Shown here: positions 1,944 through 63,771 of the stretch, piece by piece
Position numbering within the stretch: the first letter of the stretch is position 1
Layout: each line of letters begins with the position of its first letter
Source: Dimorphilus gyrociliatus
Lineage: Eukaryota; Animalia; Annelida
Length of the DNA: 64,000 bases
Reading direction: 5' to 3'
Assembly: GCA_904063045.1 (NCBI GenBank)
Contig: CAJFCJ010000009.1
Location: 414,942 to 478,941 of the forward strand
Notes under the pieces: model-generated
Told to the model about the DNA's origin: nothing
Databases searched by the model: none
What the model saw: only the letters and a program-made list of their open reading frames with translations
Made by a program: the position numbers and the translations under genes

Positions 1944-2311
1944 ATAAAACATAAGCGGACTCTTATTAACCTTCAAAGAAATGCGATGTGTTATACAATA
2001 AAAACTGATTGAAAGTACTTGAAAAGTCTGCGATAAAAAGATTTAATAAAATATTTTATGTATGTTTGAGGGATTTTGTTTTCAAAGTTTCTATGCTTTT
2101 CAATTTCTGTACAAAAATAAACATACAAGATTTAATTACAACTTGAATTCTACTCTTCTTCCATTATTTAAACATTATGGACACTTCAATTATAATTGTT
2201 TGTTTTTCGATAATACAATAGAACTTGCAGCGACATCTGTATTTCATAATTTATATGATCAGGTATTTTCGGCGGTTTTTCAAAATCGTTAAGTTCTTTT
2301 AAATCGTCGCT

Positions 2312-4842
2312 ATGTCGGTAGATAATAGCTCTCAGTTTATAGTTTTTATGCGAAATTTAGGATATGAAGGGCCCTTAAATATAGAAGACGTTAATATTGC
2401 ACTGGAAAATGATGAATTTCAATTATATGATCTGGTTAAAAATCTCTCTGAAGATAACATTGTAACTAACGAAGAACTATTACAGCAAGTATTCTTCATG
2501 AGTCTTTCATCTTGAAGATTAGCATTTATTTTTCAGCTCGAAGGCTGATCAACAGATAACGCCTGTACAAGTGGAGGAAAATATCGATTCTATCACTCTG
2601 AAAATAGAGGAAAATGCATTCGAGTTAGAGAAAGAAAGGTATAATAGAAAATCTCTTTAATCAATCTAGAATAACAGAGGATTTTCAATTAGAATCGAAA
2701 ACGAATATTTACAACATGCTGTAAACCTTCAAGAAGAAATATATTGCAACTTAATGGAAGAAAGAAATTACCTTCGGTATTGAGATCACTTAATTAAAGA
2801 TAGTATGATAAAGTATTACAAACTACTTTCCAATGACAGGGTAGCTAGAAGGAAAAAATCAGAAAGTGAAGAAGAAGCTCAAACTTGTCCAAATAAATGT
2901 GAAGCTGAATATGAAAGAGCTCTGAAGTCGTCAACAGAAGCATGCAAAAAAGTATTCCTTTTCCTATAATATCTATTTATTTCCAATTAATATTAATATT
3001 TCCCTTAAAGGTAGATAATGCATTGTCAAACGTTCAAATTGGTGTTCGTCAGTTAGCATCCATTGGAGAAAATATGTTTTTTAGTAATATGCCTTTCGAT
3101 CAACATAAGGAAGCAGAGAAGATCTTCACTCAGCAATTAACGCAATTTACAAAACGCCAGTTTATTCAAGTAATACATACAAGATTAAAGATTTAAAGTT
3201 ATTACATAAAGCTCAATTTTACCTTTTTCGAATATAGGGAATTGAAGAGTTGGCTGTGAAAAAGAACGATACTCAGTTCGAATTTTTAGACGTCACTAAA
3301 CCTGAGATATTATTATTAAAAGGATATTGCGAAGAAGTGAATATAGCTCAATGTAGACAGCTAGCAAGATTAAAAAAGCTGTAAGTAAAAGAGGTGTTTT
3401 CTTGGATTTTTAAATATAAATATTTCATGTGTATTTATATAGATTTTTTGAAAAGGAGAAGAAGTACTTTAATGCTTTGTTATTAGAAGCATCTCTTTCA
3501 GCTGCAAATCAATTCCTTGATACTGTTGAAATCAGTAAATTTTCCAAAAACATTAGTGCATTAGAGTAAGTTTTTCTTCCTTAATTAAGCAGTCTATAAA
3601 TAATAATTTTCTCTTTTCTTTCTTTATTGACTTGGTTTATTTTTAGAAAGCAGATAAATGAGAACAAATCAAAGTCTAGAAGAATAGAGAATGATATCTT
3701 GAATCTAACAACAAACTCTTTACCAATGCTGTTACAACACGCTCAAGAGGCTCAGGAAACAAGAATATTAAGAGGAGATTACGACTTGAAAATAATGAGA
3801 CAAAACTATTTTTTAGATAAACAGGACCAAGTATAATCTCATTTTTAATATGTTTATTATAAGAGATTTAATAAAATTTCAATTCAACAGGTTATTGAAG
3901 AATTGGCTAAGCAGAGAGCTCGTTGGGACATTTTATTAGTAGCATCTGATATAGAAGTGCAAAGACATCGAGAGACGAAACATCTCTTGACAGCGATTTC
4001 TTCGTTTCTTTCTGATTTTCAAACCTGCATAGAGAGTAGATCGGTAAGATAAGATGAAAACAATCATCAAGAGCACTTGGCACCTTATCTAATTCTTTTA
4101 TAATTTAGAAAGTTTTAGAGGCAATTTGCGCTATTGAGAATTATGATACCAGAACAACTGTTCACTCAAAAGATGCTACGTCATTGATGCTAGGTCAAAT
4201 TCTCACAGAAGTTCAAGGTAAATAATAAATAGAACAAATGTTTTTTAGAGCATAACATATAAAAATTGATCTATTTTTAGTTTTGAGCACTGAGAAGAGC
4301 CATAGTAAGAAATTATTCTATCCATTTTCATTCATAAATGAACGGGCGCAAGTTTTAACTGAAAAGTATAAGAATAATCAAATATCTAATTTTAAAAGAA
4401 ATGAAGATGTTATTAATAAAATAAAGGAACTGTTAGTATTGTAATTTGTTTTTTCATTATACTTATCACATCCCCTTTTGTTTTTATATTATTCTAGTGA
4501 AAACTTATGTAAGGAACTCAACGATAACTCAGTACTGAATATGTTCGAGAATCTCTATTCACAATACTTTCACAATCTTTCAACGTCACTACAAAGTTGT
4601 GAAGTGAAAGCAAAGACACTCTTAAAGGACATTGAAACAAAGAAAAAGGTAATACAAAACTCCATTTTTTATGATAATATTCAAATTTTCGTATGGTTTC
4701 CATGTTTTTATTGTATTTTGATGGTAAACAGGAATTAGGATCGAATCAATACAAGGCCTTAGAAAATGATTTATGCATCTTATTCTATACGGATCGAATG
4801 AATTTCTTAAATCGTACTCAATTGTTCTGCGAAAGTGAATAA
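2312..4842 (+). CDS. HAUS3: HAUS augmin-like complex subunit 3, multi-exon
   Basis: N-terminus SQFIVFMRNLGYEGPLNIED...NLSEDNIVTNEEL, internal ILRGDYDLKIMRQNYFLDKQD and C-terminal LENDLCILFYTD match HAUS3. Stop at 4840-4842. Confidence 0.85.
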
Positions 4843-29176: not shown

Positions 29177-32100
29177 ATGCAGTCGGCAATTTTGCTTTTG
29201 ATCTCCCTCGCATTCGCTAGTAAGTATATTTCATAAAATTGAATTTTATAACGTTGAATAAACTTTTCTCCTATTTTTATAGGCGCATTCAACATTCAAC
29301 CAAACCCTTTCCAACCTAAACAAGTTGGCACTGATGATGCACTTGTTTTTGATTATGAAAGTGATATTTTACATGGAATTGAAGGTGCTTCACAAACTTA
29401 CTCCGGACTTAAGATTAAGGGACAACTTGTTTGTACTTATGAATTGGCAAGAAGACCTCTATCTGGATCCACTACTCTCAAATTGAGAAATGTTGAAATT
29501 TTGCAAGCTAAACGTTTGGAACTTCCAACTCCTCTCAACCAAATCCCAGTTGGTGATATGGCCAGATTGAGCGATGTTGAAGATCTCGTCGAAATGATCC
29601 AAAAGCCTTTCGGTTTCAAATTTCTTGAATCAGAAATCGATGATGGAAAGATCTATGTCGAAAGAGATGATGAAGATTGGTCTGTCAACATCAAGAGAGC
29701 CATCGTTAGCGGTCTTCAACCATTTTTACCAAAGGAATTTGAAAAAACTCCCCAAGTATTCAATGTACAAGAACGTGATATCAGCGGAACTTGTGATACC
29801 AAAATCACTTACAACAAACTTTCCGGTTCTGATGAGGTCTACGTTTTGAACAAGGTCCGCAACTTCACCAACTGTGAAGAAACCGCTTCTCCAATCTACA
29901 AATTCTCCACCTCTGGTCTTTCTAGATGTTTGGAAAGAACCGAAGATGAATTGACCTGCAAATACGAATTGGTTCCATCAATGAAAACTCAATACGAAAT
30001 TTTGGTATTGGAAGGTTCCGAAACCATCCCAGCTGTTTTACTTCAAGCCAGACAAAACTCTATGTACTTCATCCCAATCACAGGAGTTAAGACCAATACC
30101 GTCGCCGTTCACGGACTCACCTCTATGGTCCTCAAGAAGGTCATCAGAGACAATGGTGAAGTTAGACCAATCACTGGTGGAAGATACGTTTCCAAAAACA
30201 TCGAATTTGAAGTCAACAAGAAACAATTGTTGCCAGAAAGAATCTTGGAAACTATTGAAATGTCTGAACAAGGAAGATTTGAGGAAGAAATTGTTAGAGA
30301 AATCGAAACTTTGCACGGACAAATCAAATTGGGAGCCGAAGAAGTTAAAGTTCAATTGGAAAAGGTTGTTGGTTTGTTGAGAAAATGCACTCCCACCATG
30401 TTGAAGAGAATCATGAAACAAATCAGAGATGAAGAACAACAAACCATTTTGATGGATCTTCTCCCAACTTGCGGTACCCCTGAGTGTGCTACCGTTGTTT
30501 TGGAACTCATCGAAGAAGAATCCGTTTCTCTTGTTAAATCCATTACTTACGTCAAGAGTCTCTCATTGAAAGCTCAACCATGCAAAAAAATCATTGAACA
30601 ATTGTTGAAACTCTCCGAAAGACTCCAAAAAGTCAGCTTGAAGAGAACCGTTGTCCTCGCCGTTGGAACCATGACCGACCGTCTCCAAACTATGTACAAG
30701 GATGCCAGAAGATACGAACAAGTTGAATCTTTCGTTAACAGAATCGTCTCCAAATTGATCGATATTGCCGAAAACAACATCAGAACCAACATGGATAGAT
30801 GCAAGTGCGTCTTGAAAGCCCTCGGAAACATCCAATTGACCAGAGAACAAGTTTCCAAAACTCTTGACTTGGCAAAATCTCAGAAATATGAAACCGAAAT
30901 AAGAATCGAAGCTATCGATACCGTCAGAAAGGTTGAATCTTTTGAATATTTGGAAAAGGTTCTTCTCGAAATCTTCCTTGATCAATCCGAAAATGTTGAA
31001 TTGAGAATGCACTGCGTTAAGTTGCTTGTTGAAAAAGAATGCAGTCTCCCAACTCTCCAAATTATTGTTCAACACATCCAATATGAGCGCAATGTTAACC
31101 TTCAATCTTTCGTTTGCTCAATGTTGAAATCTTACTCTGAAATGGTCTACCCAACCACTGTTGCCGCTCTTTTCAGAGAAAACTTGAAACACTTGCTCAT
31201 CACCAACAAACTCCCAGTTTTCCCAATCCAATACTCTCACACCTTGAAAATGTTCGGTTTGGACATTCCTTCTCTTTCTGGAGCTTACTCTGTCCTTCAA
31301 TACACCACCCCTGTCTCCACCCAAATGGTTCCAGCTTGGATCAACTATAAAACTTACTTGACTGGTATGGGACACGTTACCAAGCCCATTGAAGTTAGCT
31401 TAAAGACCAAAGGATTGCCCCAATACCTCCAACAAGTTTTGGGAAGCAAAGTTTCCATCATTGCCAAGATGCTTGAAGGTGAACTTTCTTTGGAAAAGAT
31501 CAAGGAAATTTTCCAAGAAGAAAGCATGAAATTGCCAAGAGAACTCTACGAATTGTTCAATAACAATGAATACAGAACCTTGTACATGTCCAGAGACTTC
31601 GATATCGAAAAGAACTTGGAATTGAGCATCCGTCTTTTCAACTACGAAACCATCTATTTGGATGTTCCAGCTCTTAGAGAAATCGTTGAAGATGTTTTGA
31701 AAACCCTCATCGTCAAATCTTCCAGCCCAAGAGATATCTACTCCCAAGTTACTGATCTCCTTGAACAATTGCAAACTGGACTTGACATCAGCATGACCAA
31801 TATTTTGGGCTCTGTCAATGCCATGACTCTTATCCCAAGCCCAACTGGACTCAATACTGCATGGAACTCCACCTATGCTAACATCTTCCACATGAGAGGA
31901 CAACTTAAAATCGTTACCGAACCAAGAATCGAAAAATGCATCAAATATCTTCAATTCCCAAGAAAAATCCATATCGAAACCCAAAATAAGGACTTCCAAA
32001 TCAGACACATCTTGATCAAGAGAAACAAATTGGTCAGTGCTATCCCCAAGATCCAAACCGGTGTTATGTATGAAGCTTTCGTTAGCACTATCTTGCCCAT

Positions 32101-34192
32101 CAACGGTGAATTGGAATTGGTTAGAGAACATCCACGAATGACTCTTAGAACCATCTACAAACTTGCCCAAAGACAAAAGCCTTCCGTAACTGCTTACATG
32201 AGACCAGCTACCATCGTTGTTTTGGAAGAAAAGAAAGAAATTAAAGTTTACGAACAAGTCACTCCAATCCTTGCCAAGGAAACCGTTGAACCATTCACCA
32301 TCCAAAAGACCATCCAATTGCCATACCTCTTCCCAGAAATCACCATGGAAGTTGAATCTTGCATCAGAAAGACACCATTCTCTGCTGTTCCCCTTATGGC
32401 ATGCCCCAACAAACTCCGTCTTGTCGTTGAACAAGAATTGGACACCCCAGTTGAACTTTTGGTTGAACTTAGACCATACGAAAGAATCGAAAGACCAATC
32501 ATCAAAGAAACTATGGATGTCGAAAGTGCTTACCAAAAATTGTGGTCTGGCTTGTATGGTGAAGATATCGTTGATATGGTCAATGATACCGATTCTAGAA
32601 TCCCATTCGATTTCGGACATGTTGAAAAACACTTTTACAGATCAGCATTGAAAGTTAAAATCCAACAAAGATCATCCAGCAGATGGCTCTCAACTGTCAG
32701 ACCAGAAGTAGAACTTAACTTGAAATGGATCTTTACCAGAAACTTCCTTCACCACCAATTCGCTGTGTTGATGACCCAAAAGTCTCTTCCCCAAACCTAT
32801 GTCAAGGGACACTTTGTCGCCCCAACTCTTTGCATGAACGGATTCTGCAACCAAAGACAATTCGCTGGTCTTTCCGTCTTCGTTGACCATCGCCGAATCA
32901 GCATGATCAACCTCTTTGTTGAAGATTTGAAGGAAATCAACAAATACTTGGGAATCCATCACGAACAATGCTTCAACCAACAAACTCAACTCTTGAAATA
33001 CGTTCTTCCACAAACCGTCAGGGTTGAAATGAGAAGCTCCCCAATGACCGTTCAACTTCTTCCCAAGAGCGCTATCGAAACCCTTGTTATCCTTCAAGGC
33101 TGGATTCACCAAATCATGGAACAATACGCTGATGTCTCTATGAGATACAACCCAAGAATTGGAGTCCTCAACTACGAATTGCTTGTCAAGATGTGCCCAG
33201 CTTTGGGTAAGGTTGATCTCGTTGCCAACACTATGTTGACCACCATCCGTGCCACCAACCTCCCAGTCTTTACCTTCCTCGTCCCTGATGTTCTTCCAAT
33301 CCGTCCAACAACCGTCAACAGACAATCTCTCTACAAACCAGTCTGCACCAAGACTGCCAAGATTGTCAAAACTTTCGAAGGCAAAGTTTACCACACCTCT
33401 GAAAAGAGCGAATGTGAAACCGTTCTTGCCAAGGATTGCCGTCCAAGACCCCAATGGATGATCACTTCCACAACTGAGGAAACCTCTCAACAAAAAATCG
33501 AAATCTACTACGGACAAGAAAGCCTCATCCAAATCGTTCCAAGATCTTTCGGAGTTCTCCCCAAGTTGATCGTCAACGGCAAACATTTCAACCTCGAAAG
33601 AGAATTGACCTCCCTCAGAATCCCATCTGAATACACCACAGACCACATCGTCTGCCAAAGACAAGGATTTGAAGGACAAACCCAAAAAGTTATTTGCCAA
33701 TCCGAAATCCAAGGATGGACTGTCGTAAGTGACGGTTATGAAACCAAAGTTGTCATTGCCCCAGAAATGAGAGGATACGTTTGCGGTCAATGCGAATACT
33801 TACAAGATAGCAGCAGATCTGAAGAGCTCATCAACCATGTTATCGAATCAGGATCATGCAGAAGAGAAAGAACCCTTTCCCTAAGAACCTGCCAACCTGT
33901 CTTGCAACACAGAATCGTAAAGAGACATCTCAGAAAGGGTGACATGATCTGCATTTCTCAACAAGCTTTCCCAGAATGCCCAAGAACTTGCAGACCAGAA
34001 AACAAATACAGAACCTTGAAGAACGTTAACTTCGTCTGTATGGAGAAAGAAGAAGCCATCTCCAGAGGATACATCCCAGCCCAATACAATGAATACACCG
34101 AAAAAATCGAAAGCATCGATAGAGTCTATGATTTGCCATTCACTGGAAATGAAATCACTGAAGAGCTTTTGGACATTCACGAGAGATGTTAA
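29177..34192 (+). CDS. Vtg: Vitellogenin (large lipid transfer protein), about 1650 aa; exon 1 29177-29219, exon 2 29283-34192
   Basis: Signal peptide MQSAILLLISLAFAS and LPD_N start (FDYESDIL.GI.G...SGLKI) are followed by DISGTCDTK, an alpha-helical domain (LKALGN, IRIEAID) and a vWD domain (KTFEGKVY...CETVLAKDC). The C-terminus is the Cys-rich Vtg type (CISQQAFPECPRTCRP...VNFVC). Confidence 0.9.
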
Positions 34193-34814
34193 TAAACGGA
34201 CTGGCTTTAATAATCCCCCCTATTTAATTTTCGGACTAACGATTTAATTTAAAACTATATAATTTCGTTTTGTTTGGACCGTCTAAGGTTACAAATGTAC
34301 TAGAGTATTAAAACTTTAAATTAATAAATGCATTAAAATCTTTAAAAAAAGACAATAATTTAACAAAACTGGCAAATTATTCTTTATTATTATTTCGTGT
34401 TTATAAGATAAAGACGCTTTTCTTTGTTTTTTTTTTAAAAAAAAACACAAAAAAAACAAAAAAAGTCAAACGCCTATAAACAAAATTGTCTATGATACAA
34501 TATATCAATGAAAATGTAGATAAATAGCGACCTTTCTCCTGTATTATAAAAGAAATAGTGAATGCAGATTCTTTTCCATAACAATTAGAGGCACAAAAAT
34601 GTAATCATCAAGTGAAAGAAAATGTTCCATAAGACATGCAAAAATGAAAGAATCTTTCTTTTTATATCATAAACAAGCCTTTTCTTTGATATAATGAAGC
34701 AGGAACAATGAATGATAATCTTATTCCACTGTAGCAAAAAAAACCGAACATTGTTATAAATAAAACCGATTGAGAGAGGGTACAAAAAAAAACAAGGATC
34801 AAGATAGAGAGAGT

Positions 34815-34839
34815 GTATATATATATATATATATATACA

Positions 34840-34871
<32 letters not shown>
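34815..34871. repeat. Compound (TA)n-CAG-(TA)-(GT)n microsatellite
   Basis: Direct reading. Confidence 0.9.
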
Positions 34872-34978
34872 ATTTTTTACTTCTTCATTATTTTAGGCCT
34901 ATTTAACACTCTAAGCCTAACTGCTTCCTAATCGTTCTTCTTGGGGCCGATCTCCACAGGCTGCTCAGAATAAGGTAT

Positions 34979-36675
34979 CTAAATATTTGATAAACCTATA
35001 TCTAGGGTATTTTTGTTATCTTTAACAGAAATTAGCGAAGTCTTCTTCATATTATTTCCAGTGTAAGCAATACACTTCAGCTGCCATTCGCCTAAAGCAT
35101 CGTCCCAGTCCATCTGTTGTTCAATTATTTCCTGATATTCCAAAGGTATAAAATTGTCAATAATTAGCATTTGTAAACGTAGTTCCTTGTTTAGATTTCG
35201 TAGATTATCTAATAGTCTTTCCATTTCTTTTTGATGTTCTAATTGAATTTCGGCATGTTCTGTTTTAGCTTGAATTAACATGGCCCATATTTTGTTTAAT
35301 TTAGCTGTCTTTCCTGAAGCTTCTTCCTGAAGATTTGAATATTTTTCTTCAATATCCAACTTTTCTTGCTGGAAAACAACATTTATTTCAGTATATGTCT
35401 ATATATATATATATATATAAATATTAATATATATAATATGTCTATATAAAGTATATATTTTTTAGGAATTAGGATTACCTCTTTCTTTTCAAGCTGCTTA
35501 CGAAGTTCTATTTGCTTGAAGGTACCTCTATCCAATTCCTTTGTGCTTTCTTCTAATAATCTTTCTTGTTCTTCGGCCTTTTGTAAAAGATTTTCACCCT
35601 CCACAATTATCTTCTTTTCAATTTGCAGTAGCTTATTCTTAATCATAGCTTTCTCTTTCCTATATGGAGAGAATAATGATGAGAATAATCTATTTTCTAT
35701 TTAAAGTCAGAGGAACCTACTCTGCTTGCCTTAATTCCATTTGTTTTTCAACAAGAACATTCTCAATTCTTAACTTACTTCTAGGACCTTTCTCCCTACT
35801 TTTATTTATCATCCTAATTGTTTCAATTCGATGTTCTAGTGGGAGCTCGTTATCGTGATGAGGTGATAACAAATTGTTTGTCTCCTCTTCGGATTCTTTC
35901 TCGCAACAGAAACCCGATTCATCCCCTGACTCTTCGCTATCTATAAATTTAGAGGAAACAATTTCAACAAGAAAGTAATAGTCAGAAAAACAGATGAAAA
36001 TAACTTTTCCCTATTTTATTTGTTTACTTGTTCTACTACTTTTGAGTAATACTTTTCTAGCGAAAAAAGCACAATTAGTAGGTCAGTCACTCACCTTCTT
36101 GTAATTTCTTTCGTAAATCTTCTATTTCCCTCTGGAATTTAAGAAGTAGAACATCTTTCGGATCGTCTTTAGAATATTCTTTTCTTCTCAGGTTTCTTAC
36201 CCCTCTCGGATATTTGAGAGCGGGAGACGGCTCTTGGTGGATATAATCGGCTGGACCAAGAACAATCTTATGGAAATAAAGAAAGAATATACATGTAAAA
36301 CAGTTCTGGTTTCTATTAAAAAGAATTATCGGGCTTGTTTATAGGGACAATTTTATAAATAAACGTGAATTTTGCATATCTCTATTAAGTATAAACACAG
36401 AATGACACCTGTTTTGAATAAGTTTGCCGTAGTTTGGCCGCATTATTCATCCTCACTATACATCCTGTTTCGCAAGACAAATTATCCAAGTTAGGAAAGC
36501 AGGTCGATTGATTATCACTCCCCGACAATTGATACTTCCTGGATCGTTTCCGTCTAAACAACGTCTTTAAACGTTTGGCTACAGATTTTGGTGAAGGTCT
36601 TTTATTGGTTGACAAAGAAGGCGTTACTTGATCGTTATGTATATTCAATGGGAATTTAGAATAGAACTCATCCAT
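34979..36675 (-). CDS. Motor-less KIF3A (kinesin-II) paralogue, about 409 aa; exons 36675-36409, 36266-36095, 35940-35721, 35659-35479, 35368-34979
   Basis: The stalk/tail closely matches KIF3A ([17 protein letters not shown]...[12 protein letters not shown]...[17 protein letters not shown]; [22 protein letters not shown]). All five exons join in frame via GT-AG. No P-loop or switch motifs are present and there is no room for them before PKD2. Confidence 0.8.
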
Positions 36676-37030
36676 TTCACATATCCTCTCCTCCTGCAAT
36701 ATGTACGTCCAGCAGCTGCAAACTGCAGAGTGATGAGCGAATTGTTTAGCCCACTCTGCAGTATGGCCGTGCAAACACCCACACACGTTTTTGGAAATTT
36801 GCCAATGTATAGTGTGTTAGATCAATTTCACCCTTTACGAAAAATCCTTATGAAAATCGTTAACTCAGCATCATTCCCATAATAGAATCTTAATCGTTTC
36901 TTAAGCTTTACTCTAACTTATAGGCCTATAAAGTATAAGTTAAATCCCAAAGCGATAAACTTATTTTATTAGAGAGAATAACTGAGAGGAAGAAAAGGGG
37001 AATTTTTAAATACTTTAGTTGCTTTTTATT

Positions 37031-37071: not shown

Positions 37072-37517
37072 TCTGTTTTAATAAAATGTTGCCTAAGTGT
37101 TAAAAAATACTAAAGTAAAAATAGAGAAGTAAAAACAAGCTACTTATTTAAATATTTTGCAAGTGAAAATCATTTGTATTGTTTTCTCATACTGAAAAAG
37201 GAAAAGTTAGTTTGCCCGGCTTTTCCCATTCTATTATTTTTTTACTTTTGGACTAATACAAAGAGAATATGAAATCAACTAAAAAAATGATTATTTCAAC
37301 ATCAATTAAGCGTTATTCAACCACTTAATTATAGCCAATAATATAATTTCACATTTAATTAGAGGTTAATGCTTTAGTAGGTGGCGCCAATTGAAGAAAA
37401 TAACCAATTATTACAGGCATTTGCACTTCGTTAGAAGATTGTTTACAGAGAGAAACTGTGAAAATAGAATTTGAAGAAAAAAGTTCTTTGTAACTTTTTC
37501 TGCTTTCCTCAATTTCT

Positions 37518-40500
37518 TTACTGTTTGGGGAGAAAATAATCAATATTAGCGTAAGAGTCGTAAACAAATATAAGGATATGCTTAGATAAGCTAATGCATT
37601 TTGTGTACGAACATTTGGGGCTCCTCCCATATTTGATCCTGGTCTGGATGGGGGACGTTGACGTAGACTAGCTGAAGAACCCATACCGTCAGAGTCCCAC
37701 TTTTCAAGTTCATCCCTGACTAGCTTCTCCATTTGCTCTCGTTTATCATCATCTCCGCCAGACTATTTAAAAACATTATTATGTTAGTTAGTGATTACCC
37801 GATTAATTAGCTAATATATATATACTGTATATATATATAAGTATATGTCTATATTTACCTCACTAATACTATCTAGCAGCTTACTCATCGTCTCTCTTCT
37901 TTTTGTCTTTGCTCTCTCCATTGCTTCAAGTTTTAGTAGAACGGCATCGATTTTCGATACTATCGATCCTATAGAATGCTCCATCCTATCAACTCTTCTC
38001 GCAAGTATGACAAACTCTTCATAAGATACACCTGAAGTGGATCTTGCACCGTGATCCTCCTCGTCGCTGTCAGAACCAAGACCACTCTTAGGTCTATCGC
38101 CTGCTTCAACATCCATTAAGTCCTTGCTTAATTTCTGTTTCTGTCCTTCGAGATCAGCTTGCATTCTCTTTTGCTCATTTTCGTCAAGAATTCTATCTCC
38201 GTCCAGATCGTATTTAGCGAAAACTGCTTCGATTTCAGCTTCGGCATAACCTCTTGTCTTTAGATCTTGTCTCCATTCCTCGAAATCTAGCTGTTTATCG
38301 TGATTAATATCAGCTGATTTCAATGCTTTTTGGATATCGATAATCTTATCTCTCTTTATGTTCAATTTATCCAACATCTTGTCGTAACTCTTCTTAAAGT
38401 AATCGCCAACTTCAAATTCGTTCTGCTGACTTGAAACATCTGCTTTGACCTCCGAGTAAGTGTCGTTGATGATGGCCAAAAACATGTTAAGGAGGACAAA
38501 GAATACGAAGAATACGTAGAGAATAAAGTACATGGGACCCAAAACTCTATTTGCAGCTTCTAATTCGTGGAAGTTAAAATCACCCAAGATGATACGGAAA
38601 AGGGTAAAGATTGCACTAGGGAATGACGAAAAGTCTTTAACCTGGGTACCGAAGATTAAATATCCCAATTGTGCAAAAGCCAAGAACACAATAAAGAACA
38701 TAACAGCAAAACCAGCTAAATCTTTAGCACATCTAGCCAGAGTGGAACTAAGTTGGGTCATTGTTTTGTTGAAAGAGATGTACTTGAAAATTTTAATCCA
38801 TGCAAGGAAAACCAGTATAGCGATTGCGCTGTTAAATTGAACTTGCCAATAGCTGAGAAATTCAAAATCAGGATATTCCTCAGGCTGTTTCAAGAGATCA
38901 GTTAGCATTTTATCGACTTTAATCGTTCTATAAACGTTGAATATCACGCAGACAAAGGAAATTACTATTACGAGAATGTCCAAAATGTTCCAGAAACTCT
39001 TAAAGTAGCTGAATTTTAGTCTTTTGATCTCAAGAACTTCCTCTACAATATAATAGCAGATGAATAAGCAGAAAATAGCCTCGCAAGCCAAAACGAAATA
39101 ATCTCCAGCAGTTACATAACGAATAAGCTTTACGGTTCTAAAATTCCAAGATGGTATAGCTCCTCCCGTTGCTGGGAATTCAATTAGCAAACGAACCACA
39201 CAGAATAAATTAATATTGGCATTGTAGACAGTGAAATCAACGAAAATGGCTCTCGTTCCCCTATCCAACCAGAGATTTTGCTTTAAATCGGCAATAATTA
39301 TCTTGGATTTTTCCATAGTTGTTGCCAAATTTTGAACATAACCTCCACCACCGTAAGTACTTATCAATCCCCAGTGAGAACTTCCTTTCAATTGCGATTC
39401 CGAGCTGTACGTCCATCTGATAAAGGAAAGAAAAGATAGAAAATGTTGAAATTCATCTAAATTAAACTTACGCGGATCCATTCATCTTTCCAAAAGGATT
39501 TTTATCTTCAATACTCTTAGCATAAACATCATAACACTGTTTAATATCATTTTGAAAATCGCTGTGAACCGTGCAAGAGTCGTTCCGAACTTTCAATTGT
39601 CTTAGTCGGGGAACTCCTAAAACTTTGTTCTCGTAGAAGATATAACCAAGTTCATTCTGGCTAACATTTCTTCCATTGTACCATTTTTCCCAGTACAAAC
39701 CGTCCATAAGAGGAGTTTCAGAGAACTGTATAATAAAATAAAAAAAAGCGTCTAAAAAGAGTCAACTATAGGAAAAATATATGTTTGTACCCTCCAAAAA
39801 TCGGCCATACTAGTCATTCCACGGAAAGTATTCTTAGTATCAGGAAATTGGGAGTCCAAGAACAATTCACTCATAACTTTCGTGTAATAATATAAAGTTG
39901 GACTGGTCATAGCGAAGGTCACTGAAAATGGAAATATAGAAATAAATCAATCGATAATATCTGAAATAAGAAATAAACAAAAGCGTTGGGAGAAGATAAT
40001 CAAAAATTCAGAATATAACTCTTTTCTAATAAATAATTCAATGTTTTATTATTTTTTATTAAAAAAAAAAAAAGATTCAGCCTATCCTAATGTGGAATAT
40101 AAATAAAAAAGACTTGAATAATTTGCACGGAATATATTGTTTCATTAGAATTCCTTTAAGGTTAAAAAAGAAATCTATATATTGATTTTTGAAGTTAGAA
40201 ATAATTGAATAGATAAGATTTTTGTGTAGGTTTTCAATTGAGAAAGTCGTTTGAATAATTAAGTTCTAATCTAACAATAGGATATTTTTAATATTAATTG
40301 AATAAGTTAATTTTATGGCTTTTGTCTTATTAAGTCTTAAAAGCTATTACTTTTAAAATATACTATTTTTCTTACCAATACACAAGATGATAAGGAAAAT
40401 TACGTAGACCAGTAATTCTCTTAAAGTTGTCTTAATGTGCATTTCCTTATCGGAAGTTGTGTCTTCCGTTTGTCTAGTTGCCCACAGAGCTAAAAAGTTG

Positions 40501-61462: not shown

Positions 61463-63771
61463 ATGACACCGGGAAAGAAAATTGCCGGCTCTAAAAATGT
61501 TAAGCAAAAATCAAAATTATCAAAACCAATTAATCGTAAGAGTTCATTACCGTTGGATAGAGTTGCTATGTTGGTTGAAGAAGCTAATGAGATAAGTCAA
61601 TTATTGAATAAAGACTATGTGAGAAATTTTTCCCTTGTACAAGATATTTGTTTTACTAGTTTAAGATGATAAGCAATGTACTCATTGCTAAACTATTTAC
61701 TTTGTTAAAAGGTATTTGTTAAGGCTGCTGAAGAAAGTGATGACGAAAAAGAGAGAATTATAAAAGTGATTAACATTCAGATGTCTCTCAGCACGAGATG
61801 GTCGATAATTAAATTAAAAGAACGTCTTGTTCAAATGAGAAAGTTATTATATGAGGTAAGCAATAATTTATATTTTCACTATTCTGCTAGCATATTTGTG
61901 TGCTGGAGGTATTTAAATTGCTTTTATCTTTCAATTGTGATATTATATCATGATATTAAGTGTTATTTAAGACTAAATAGGTGGAAAACACAAGGTAATT
62001 TTTTTTTGGAATTGAAATATTCGCCCCTCGTGGGATTATATACAAAACAGTCGACAAATAGACTAAAGGATTAACATTTTATTTCATGCTGCTTTTTTTT
62101 TATCAGCAAGATTCTATCCTGATAAGCAATGAAGACGAAGTGTTTTTTGATCCGAACGATACCTGGACGAAAGAGGATTTAACTAAATACTCCGATATCC
62201 TTGCTAAAAGGAAATTGCCCAAAGATTCGCTGATGTGAGGAAAAAAATTCCAATTTACATACAAAACGCAGAATAATATATTATTCATCGAACAGAAGCT
62301 TAGACGTATCTGTTGCTGATTTACTCCTGACTATGGAAACCGAAGAAAGAGCATCTCCCAAATCAGACGAACTTATACCAGTAAAGGACGTACCTAATTC
62401 AACTGATAATCATATTCCACTAACTCCTCAACTCTCAAATAATAGTGATTCATTAAATATATTCAAACAGTGCGAAGACGTTTTATACTCAATTAAGAAA
62501 AGCCAAAACGAAGGTAACAATTATTCTTTTATAAGATATTTATATTTTTTAGGGAAAAAAACACCGCCAGCTAATCAAGAGTTTTCAAAATAGGACATTA
62601 TACCTTATTCTTCATTTCGGAAATAAAAAAAAAGTAGTAATATAGAGAGAGAAAATGCTAAAGTGCTTTTCACTTTGCTTGGTCTTTATAACACTTGAAA
62701 ACCTACCGGTTTTAATTTGCAATAACTATCTTTCTGTTAGTCCTATTAAGATTGTTTTTGGGATATACAGTATATATATAAATTTATATATGCTATATAC
62801 GCTATACTTATATTTATATGTCTAGAGTATAAAGTATAAACAGATTGCTATTTATATTTTCAGAACAACCAAGTTTTATTGATAGTATTATATCAAATTG
62901 CCAGAGGCTAATCAACACCTTTCAAGTGTTCGCTGTGAACGAGGAAAAGTCTATGTTTCATTGTATTCCTGCTTTGGAGAAATTAGACACTGTCTCCAAT
63001 CTATGGCGTCGTACAGTTCGTAGTACAGTCCTAAGTAGAACGACTGGAGATTCGCTTAGGGATTCGATTCGGGAATTAACCAATAATCTGCTATTATTCG
63101 TCCAAACTCGCCGAGGCTTGTCGGACTGTGAAAAAAGCGTTTTAAAAACGGTTTTTGCTGCTTCCTCTTTGGCATTAATTGCTGGAGATACGCCCTCTTG
63201 TCTTCGCAAAAAAAGTAGACGCACTTCAGTGTCCACTCAGACTATAAACGCCGATTTAATAACATTCGATGGAGATGAAGAGGATATTACGCAACCGCTT
63301 ATTCAATTAAATGTTAGAAAATCGATATTAGAGGGGGCAAAGGCTGCTTCAGATTGCGTTTTTGAGGTTGTTAAACAATCATTAAAGGCTAACGAGGAAG
63401 AGATATTAGAAAAGAATCTCAAAGATGTTATAAGAACCTCTATAGACATTGTTTCGGCACTGGCTACCAGAATCATGGATGTGGAAGAAGATCATAAAAT
63501 CTGGAAGAATTTTCGTCGGGACATTACCCAGATCAATTCTCTGGCCGATAGCGTCACGCTAATGGTTACAGCAAGCCGTACAACTCCCCAAGCAAATGGA
63601 AGATGTGCTCAAATGGTCCTTAAATCTCTGGTGACATTGACACAGCATTATCCACTTTTTGAATCTGCTCTTATAGCTGTTCGTCATTCTATAAAAAACA
63701 TTAAACTATCCCCGGGTGATAACAGCGTTCGACTCTTGCCACCAGTACCGTCTGTTGAATTATCTACATAA
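61463..63771 (+). CDS. KIF14-like C-terminal tail protein lacking motor and FHA domains, about 517 aa; exons 61463-61618, 61712-61855, 62107-62234, 62296-62513, 62864-63771
   Basis: EEANEISQLLNKDYVF...IKVINIQMSLSTRWSIIKLKERLVQMRKLLYE...EDEVFFDPNDTW parallels KIF14 (QEANAISSKLKTYYVF...IRVRNL...STFWSLEKFESKLAAMKELYE...EDAFCDPEDEW). The exons join in frame. Confidence 0.68.

Follow-up and report, generated by a model that had tools for sequence, protein, structure and literature searches.

A motor-less gene of KIF3A descent conserved downstream of PKD2 in the annelid Dimorphilus gyrociliatus and in a second species

The gene described in this work lies on the minus strand of a 64,000-nucleotide stretch of the genome of the annelid Dimorphilus gyrociliatus (contig CAJFCJ010000009.1 of the GenBank assembly GCA_904063045.1, forward-strand positions 414,942 to 478,941), which is called the window in what follows. 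Its five exons, located just downstream of a PKD2 gene, encode the neck, stalk and tail of the kinesin-II subunit KIF3A behind a new N-terminus, and the motor domain is missing. The pattern of substitutions between D. gyrociliatus and a second species indicates that this headless gene is a protein-coding gene under purifying selection and not a relic. We hold with high confidence that it is a real coding gene that arose from a partial duplicate of KIF3A. The role of its product, possibly that of a partner or regulator of kinesin-II, is held less firmly and is weighed below.

The five minus-strand exons have canonical GT/AG borders and intron phases 0, 1, 2 and 0, and their spliced join of 1227 nt gives 409 codons with no internal stop. 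Exon 1 (e1, 36675-36409) starts at the ATG at 36675, contributes the 89 codons of the new N-terminus and ends at a donor whose CAG and GT meet at 36409/36408. Exon 2 (e2, 36266-36095) encodes the last ~25 residues of the motor and then the KIF3A neck coil; exon 3 (e3, 35940-35721), an acidic patch and the first stalk segment; exon 4 (e4, 35659-35479), the stalk with the kinesin-2 hinge; and exon 5 (e5, 35368-34979), the C-terminal coiled coil, the beta-hairpin and its flanking helices (KAP3-binding/HAC), up to a TAG at 34981-34979. These coordinates, splice sites and frames agree with those of an earlier sequence-only reading of the same DNA, which had proposed five in-frame exons and a protein of about 409 aa. 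The start must be corrected, since position 36786, where that reading had begun the gene, is merely the first GTG of the open frame, and the first ATG is at 36675. The stretch 36786-36676 is 99% identical between the species with no third-position pattern, and thus behaves as non-coding. Around this ATG, position -3 is A and position +4 is G in both species. It should be noted that all searches were run exon by exon, and the exons were concatenated only for codon phase, in the estimates of the ratio of nonsynonymous to synonymous substitution (dN/dS, or omega), and for the tree alignment.

The absence of the motor was apparent in every search. When the whole 77.9-Mb genome was scanned in six frames for the kinesin motor family PF00225, 98 exon-level matches were obtained and none of them fell in the window. 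A tblastn search with the motor exons of the KIF3A genes of the same animal recovered, in the window, only the e2 remnant of ~25 residues; tblastn matches at 61463-63771 did not rise above chance. Furthermore, Pfam found no family in e1-e4, where e1 and e2 had no match even at an E value of 10, and detected no kinesin domain in any part of the model, and no motor exon is present at the locus of the second species either. Upstream, the last exon of PKD2 ends at ~37290 and about 0.6 kb separates it from the ATG; the DNA from PKD2 to e1 is continuous and free of Ns in the window. These results bear out two statements of the sequence-only reading: that only an eroded last strand and helix, the alpha6 remnant, are left of the motor, and that the space upstream has no room for motor exons. 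Judged by the PF00225 motor, the gene falls outside the kinesin superfamily.

The remnant itself has evolved unevenly. The first 15 codons of e2, which correspond to the loop before alpha6, are invariant between species in spite of 7 synonymous changes. The next 17 codons, the former alpha6, show 29% identity and an omega of 0.42, and are nearly free, and the neck coil that comes after them is 81% identical. Taking as reference the columns that are invariant across twelve full-length KIF3As (pan-KIF3A columns), e2 keeps 16 of 33, and the losses are concentrated in alpha6.

By descent, the gene belongs to the KIF3A subfamily, on the evidence of the tree, of the tail architecture and of the gene structure. 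Exon 5 (129 aa) aligned end to end with residues 57-184 of the human KIF3A tail in PDB entry 9w9h_A (E 2.9e-48), against an E of only 1.2e-14 with KIF3B. Similarly, e2 matched the KIF3A neck chimera 5jx1 with an E of 7.9e-5, compared with 1e-3 to 5e-3 for the motor ends of KIF3B, OSM-3 and KIF3C. When representative proteins were searched exhaustively with e5, every match was a fragment or an orthologue of KIF3A, at identities of at most 74%, and a profile with a 475-aa fragment of crab KIF3A at its head yielded ordinary KIF3A alone. In the genome, the KIF3A-type tail was found three more times, in two full-length KIF3A genes and in one KIF3B-like gene. The full-length paralogues A (L040) and B (L041; C5:3342000-3351999) are both on contig C5, the KIF3B-like gene is on contig C7, and a KAP3 gene is on contig C6. 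Identity to the paralogues amounts to 61-66% for e5 (compared with the tail exons), 71-76% for e4 and 46-48% for e2.

The gene structure reveals how the copy was made. Introns 2, 3 and 4 are homologous in position and phase (1, 2, 0) to those of paralogue A, the phase 1 and phase 2 introns being those that flank e3; therefore the copy was made at the DNA level and not by retroposition. The last motor exon of paralogues A and B runs unbroken through the site at which e2 starts. Because the homologous DNA in both is an uninterrupted exon, intron 1 (36267-36408) and its acceptor are new; its GT and AG are kept in the two species, and the rest, at 55% identity, is unalignable. The 5' breakpoint of the duplicate thus lies inside the last motor exon.

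The sequence-only reading had called the gene a KIF3A paralogue and had suggested that a full-length KIF3A be sought elsewhere in the genome and a tree built. With the two genes on contig C5 at hand, a tree was made from per-exon alignments of e2, e4 and e5 (244 columns) with nine named KIF3A proteins and the KIF3B-like gene as outgroup. The headless copies of the two species cluster at 100/100, and the pair falls inside a clade with D. gyrociliatus KIF3A-A and KIF3A-B and the KIF3A-A of the second species (100/99). This placement, together with the e5 match, corroborates the paralogy; and since the headless pair nests within the dinophilid KIF3A clade, the duplication is lineage-specific. The stem branch of the headless pair measures 0.83 changes per site. 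Along with the branch lengths within the pair, given below, this suggests that the duplication led first to a burst of change and then to an evolution that was constrained yet faster.

The second species was reached through an open frame (P0003) that shares derived e5 residues; it came from Logan assemblies of four sequencing runs and was found by a short-protein word search with e5 restricted to 71-226 aa. The corresponding contigs are unspliced DNA, and those of the four separate runs are 100% identical to each other where they overlap. In contig L044 (17.6 kb), PKD2 is followed by the KIF3A-like exons and then by a convergent vitellogenin gene, in the same layout as in the window, and the PKD2 proteins of both loci are 90.7% identical. 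The introns and intergenic DNA show 40-55% identity between the species and are effectively unalignable. The five exons, however, are 72-85% identical, with no indel except one codon in e5; the lengths of e1-e4 (267, 172, 220 and 181) are equal, all eight splice sites are kept, and no stop interrupts e1-e5 in either species.

The substitutions in these exons are those of a coding sequence. Over 408 codons, the Nei-Gojobori proportions of synonymous (pS) and nonsynonymous (pN) differences were 0.62 and 0.124, with a dN/dS of 0.10. Differences at codon positions 1, 2 and 3 numbered 41, 33 and 115 in e1-e4 (Fisher p 6e-37) and 20, 10 and 38 in e5; the other two frames contain 30-45 stops and have a pN/pS of ~1.1-1.2. 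For the same pair of species, pN/pS was 0.08 in a PKD2 exon, 0.40 in the vitellogenin gene and 0.10 in the tail exon of KIF3A-A. As two species were compared, the constraint belongs to the pair and is not assignable to single branches. The dN/dS is not near 1, and in neither species do we see frame lesions or splice decay, as a pseudogene would show; a pseudogene is ruled out because a dN/dS of ~0.10 and a position-3 bias persist next to introns that can no longer be aligned. Neutral evolution of the tail, the outcome that the sequence-only reading had named as speaking against it, is likewise excluded by this ratio and by the omega of e5 itself (0.10).

Another aspect to mention is the new N-terminus, in which the constraint is most severe. 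Exon 1 is 88.8% identical in amino acids between species (pS 0.50, pN 0.06), and its last 63 codons encode identical protein (100%) in spite of 19 synonymous differences. Counting across the e1/e2 junction, no change is seen in 78 consecutive residues in spite of 26 synonymous differences, and no other part of the gene is as strongly constrained. Residues 41-47 form a basic cluster, RRKRSRK, that includes RRKRS. In an AlphaFold2 model of e1 (predicted local distance difference test score, pLDDT, 53), the sole element is a basic amphipathic helix at 29-41 that holds the start of RRKRS/RRKRSRK. As to the origin of e1, neither a Pfam family nor a second copy in the genome was found; its best look-alike in the ESM atlas, at 0.79, did not qualify as one, and its similarity to the KIF3A motor does not exceed that of shuffles. 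With the junction sites kept in two species, these results support the earlier proposal that an unrelated basic first exon has been joined, at 36409 to 36266, to what remained of KIF3A.

The conservation of the KIF3A stalk and tail, also claimed previously, was confirmed with the pan-KIF3A columns. Exon 4, which is 85% identical between species (pN/pS 0.11), keeps 19 of 20 invariant columns, and e5 keeps 48 of 60. In e5, the beta-hairpin residues W610, G615, W617 and Q618 are present, as are the acidic residues E559, D562 (as E) and E566 of the coiled coil. Structural work has shown that the conserved elements of the tail hold KAP3, independently of the last 38-59 residues (PMC12527917, PMC12551710). 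Exon 3, with 62.5% amino acid identity between species and an omega of 0.24, is the loosest exon.

The tail ends in a different way in each species. Beyond the TAG at 34981-34979, the reading frame of D. gyrociliatus can still be matched, with no indel, to the 33 terminal codons of full-length KIF3A (..NRPKxxKK-stop), down to the ancestral TAA at 34879-34877. This tail relic (34978-34877, minus strand) contains a second in-frame TAG at 34930-34928. The second species has a Tyr codon at each of these positions; its frame continues as far as the ancestral stop and gives a protein of 442 aa. The DNA of the relic is 67.6% identical between species, at a level between those of coding and non-coding DNA. 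D. gyrociliatus thus appears to have recently lost a disordered C-terminal end, and the pattern would fit a truncation followed by decay of the new 3' untranslated region (3'UTR). Each TAG replaces a Tyr codon, and it is unlikely that both are read as Tyr; we know of no such recoding in annelids. Human KIF3A without its last 38-59 residues heterodimerises and is autoinhibited as before (PMC12527917). Immediately after the ancestral stop, at 34800-34876, there are (CA)n and (TA)n microsatellites that are absent there in the second species.

From these data we propose the following course of events. A DNA-level partial duplicate of KIF3A most probably arose in the dinophilid annelid lineage, starting inside the last motor exon, with the catalytic head consequently gone, and the copy gained a new first exon and a new intron. 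The predicted product, of 409 aa here and 442 aa in the second species, would consist of an invariant basic module of ~78 residues, a decayed spacer derived from alpha6 and the neck linker, the KIF3A neck coil, the acidic patch, the stalk with its hinge, plus the coiled coil of the C-terminus with the KAP3-type beta-hairpin and helices. Its stalk could pair with the KIF3B-like subunit and its tail could bind KAP3. This would yield a kinesin-II with a single head, or else a KIF3B/KAP3 complex that is non-motile and competes with both full-length KIF3A proteins. The N-terminal module might supply a replacement interaction, for example an electrostatic binding to microtubules or membranes, or a phospho-regulated targeting through RRKRS. 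The idea of a headless regulator or dominant negative of kinesin-II, raised by the sequence-only reading, gains plausibility because the parts that bind KIF3B and KAP3 (stalk, hinge, beta-hairpin and helices) are the conserved ones; genes for both candidate partners are present in the genome. Considered as a whole, that is, as a real gene whose product acts with kinesin-II, this explanation is the one we favour, by a modest degree of belief; for the mechanism by itself, as a partner or regulator, we judge the chances to be balanced.

Several observations weigh against the kinesin-II explanation. The pairing with KIF3B and the binding of KAP3 are suggested by conservation only. The part under the greatest constraint is the new N-terminus, to which the model gives no confident fold. 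The path between the two headless copies in the tree is 0.41, compared with 0.09 for the KIF3A-A orthologues, i.e. ~4 times longer, and the tail exon has an omega of 0.10, compared with 0.04 in full-length KIF3A-A. In e3 the basic cluster of full-length KIF3A has been lost and the first stalk segment is loosely constrained. The hinge motif reads VEGEN in D. gyrociliatus, compared with VGGEN in the second species and in the paralogues (GG to EG). The hairpin apex keeps two acidic residues in D. gyrociliatus and has lost one of them in the second species, and of the APC-contact residues Y626, M631 and Q634, the first two are kept here and are F and M in the second species, while Q is lost in both. 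The faster rate and these changes raise the prospect that the specificity of the protein is no longer for kinesin-II. The dissimilar tail ends, with two TAGs in one species and an open frame in the other, must be added to the points above.

In the most serious alternative, the gene would encode a real headless protein that works outside kinesin-II, and the coiled coil would serve as a dimerising scaffold for the N-terminal module, for instance in a nuclear or membrane role. The 78 invariant residues of the module, its RRKRSRK cluster, the long stem branch and the ~4-fold faster evolution of the stalk and tail would all suit such a protein, as would the changes in the hinge, hairpin apex and APC-contact residues and the fact that the D. 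gyrociliatus genome could dispense with the C-terminal 33 codons. However, conservation in the stalk and tail is best at the pan-KIF3A columns (19/20 and 48/60 kept), with the tryptophans of the hairpin and the KAP3-binding helices among them, and a generic coiled coil would have no need of them. In addition, the loss of the tail end is harmless to heterodimerisation and autoinhibition in the human protein (PMC12527917). We regard this alternative as unlikely, though with a real claim to attention.

Within the kinesin-II explanation, two specific forms deserve mention, and we consider them doubtful. In the first, a kinesin-II with one head would have the headless chain as its physiological second chain, next to the KIF3B head and KAP3, and the N-terminal module, in place of the lost head, would be a non-catalytic foot on microtubules or membranes, by analogy with Kar3-Vik1 of budding yeast. 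In the second, a dead KIF3A head that stands alone would dock to the module, and the two would build a split, non-covalent pseudo-motor. The candidate for such a head is a divergent kinesin head upstream of KIF3A-B (L041, reverse complement 2120-3318), which has a degenerate P-loop, GVSGSGRS, and ends after the neck linker. It resembles the headless gene in being a lineage-specific KIF3A duplicate that retains one half of the protein; it differs from it in being the opposite half (a head without a stalk) and in its location, which is a different contig. Both include the same ~45 residues of alpha6 and the neck linker, and no common derived residues were seen between them. A gene fission, in which the dead head and the headless stalk would be the halves of a single break, was also considered and rejected on account of that overlap and of the different contigs.

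A further alternative is that the exons are alternative 3' exons of PKD2, reached by read-through or splicing, so that a chimera of PKD2 and the KIF3A stalk would be produced. The exons are on the same strand as PKD2, ~0.6 kb downstream of its last exon; in both species, 37 codons ahead of the ATG are free of stops in its frame, and several possible acceptors (..GCAG) are found in the conserved block upstream of it. Nevertheless, PKD2 has its own conserved terminal exon, with a stop at a conserved junction, and the upstream block is conserved as DNA (96-99%) and shows no codon pattern, which is what a promoter or 5' untranslated region (5'UTR), unlike a coding sequence, would be expected to show. 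An open run of 37 codons is nothing out of the ordinary in a block that is richer in GC (we estimate ~0.17 by chance), and the ATG context (A at -3, G at +4) is present in both species. This alternative is thus quite improbable.

Even less probable is a decaying partial-duplicate pseudogene that merely looks spliceable. The missing motor, the eroded alpha6, the two in-frame TAGs near the 3' end and the fast evolution with respect to the paralogues could be read in this way. Against it stand the dN/dS of 0.10 over 408 codons at a saturated synonymous divergence, the exons free of stops and frameshifts in two species when the other frames hold 30-45 stops, and the preservation of all splice sites and exon lengths. 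Furthermore, both TAGs lie within the last 33 of ~442 codons, downstream of everything that is conserved. Finally, a collapse or break in the assembly that removed the motor exons can be practically dismissed, as nothing was found in its favour, the sequence is continuous and without Ns from PKD2 to e1, and the independent assembly of the second species, from four runs, shows the gene without a motor in an identical arrangement between the same neighbours; the sequence-only reading had named this artefact as a further danger to it.

The comparison with known systems helps to place the kinesin-II explanation. With full-length KIF3A the gene shares the neck coil, the acidic patch, the hinge, the C-terminal coiled coil, the beta-hairpin/HAC tail and three intron positions. 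It differs in the lack of a motor, in view of which its product can neither hydrolyse ATP nor walk, in the new N-terminal exon, in the eroded alpha6 and neck linker, in its 4-fold faster evolution, and in a tail that is cut by a stop in D. gyrociliatus. In the laboratory, poisoning kinesin-II with subunits that lack the head is a classic approach. In Xenopus melanophores, headless Xklp3, a stalk and tail without a head like the product proposed here, acts as a dominant negative; constructs of this type assemble with the partner present in the cell and block transport by kinesin-II (PMC2132968). That was an engineered truncation, whereas here we have a natural gene, present in two species and provided with a constrained N-terminal module. 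Because it has been conserved in both with this added and strongly constrained module, the headless gene is probably more than a passive competitor.

In budding yeast, the kinesin-14 Kar3 is paired with a non-catalytic partner, Vik1 or Cik1, and Vik1 keeps a motor-like fold without a nucleotide site. The resemblance would be one of concept, with one catalytic head and a non-motor partner joined by a coiled coil; no motor fold is left in the headless gene, and family and origin are unrelated. KIF7/Costal2 and KIF26 are immotile or ATPase-dead kinesins that have been re-purposed as scaffolds or regulators, and in them the motor domain is still recognisable, unlike in the headless gene, which has deleted it. 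The literature searches turned up no description of a headless KIF3A gene that is natural and under selection.

Non-coding DNA around the gene is conserved at several places. The block that adjoins the ATG (36870-36676, minus strand) is 95.9% identical between species over 195 columns, with a core at 99%, compared with 50% for the intergenic DNA just upstream and 40-55% for the introns. Its changes show no third-position pattern and it is single-copy in the genome; an exact 35-nt piece of it was not found in the JGI metagenomes. We presume that this block contains the core promoter and 5'UTR of the headless gene. The possibility that it is an RNA gene was rejected, as it has no Rfam match and its fold is no stabler than those of shuffles (z -0.5). 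In intron 2, the first 90 nt (36005-36094) reach 89% identity between species, and the remainder reaches 53%. Retention of the intron would bring the frame to a stop two codons on (GGT GAG TGA), just past the neck coil, and the conserved part may be a splicing-control element or some other embedded element.

PKD2, upstream and on the same strand, has its coding end at ~37617 plus a TAA at 37520-37518 that would be formed at the splice junction in both species. Its last exon (37290-37523, minus strand) appears to be almost pure 3'UTR. The ~230 nt after the TAA are 87% identical between species with frame-shifting indels nonetheless, and look like a strongly conserved non-coding 3'UTR, to judge from this pattern; most of the gap from there to the ATG is unalignable. 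The genome contains two PKD2 paralogues that are ~85% identical, one in the window (37811-39481) and one at C14:320558-322782, and the annotated D. gyrociliatus protein DgyrCDS9711 corresponds to the C14 copy (99%) and not to the one in the window. On the other side, convergent on the headless gene, a vitellogenin-type large lipid-transfer protein is encoded in a single open frame of 1582 codons (29444-34192, plus strand). It evolves fast between the species, with 66.6% amino acid identity and the pN/pS of 0.40 mentioned above.

Regarding the origin of genes, this locus offers a clean and datable case of a new gene made from a broken duplicate, with a break inside an exon, a new intron, a new first exon and a conserved upstream element. 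If the pairing with KIF3B and KAP3 is true, kinesin-II, the motor by which cilia are built, would have in this gene its own regulator or a variant with a single head. The animal concerned relies on cilia to move and has, in other respects, a compact and conservative genome. It would then become testable how much of the transport needs two heads and how the dosage of kinesin-II is controlled. Either a one-headed kinesin-II or a split pseudo-motor, if confirmed, would be a new way to tune intraflagellar or cytoplasmic transport in an animal.

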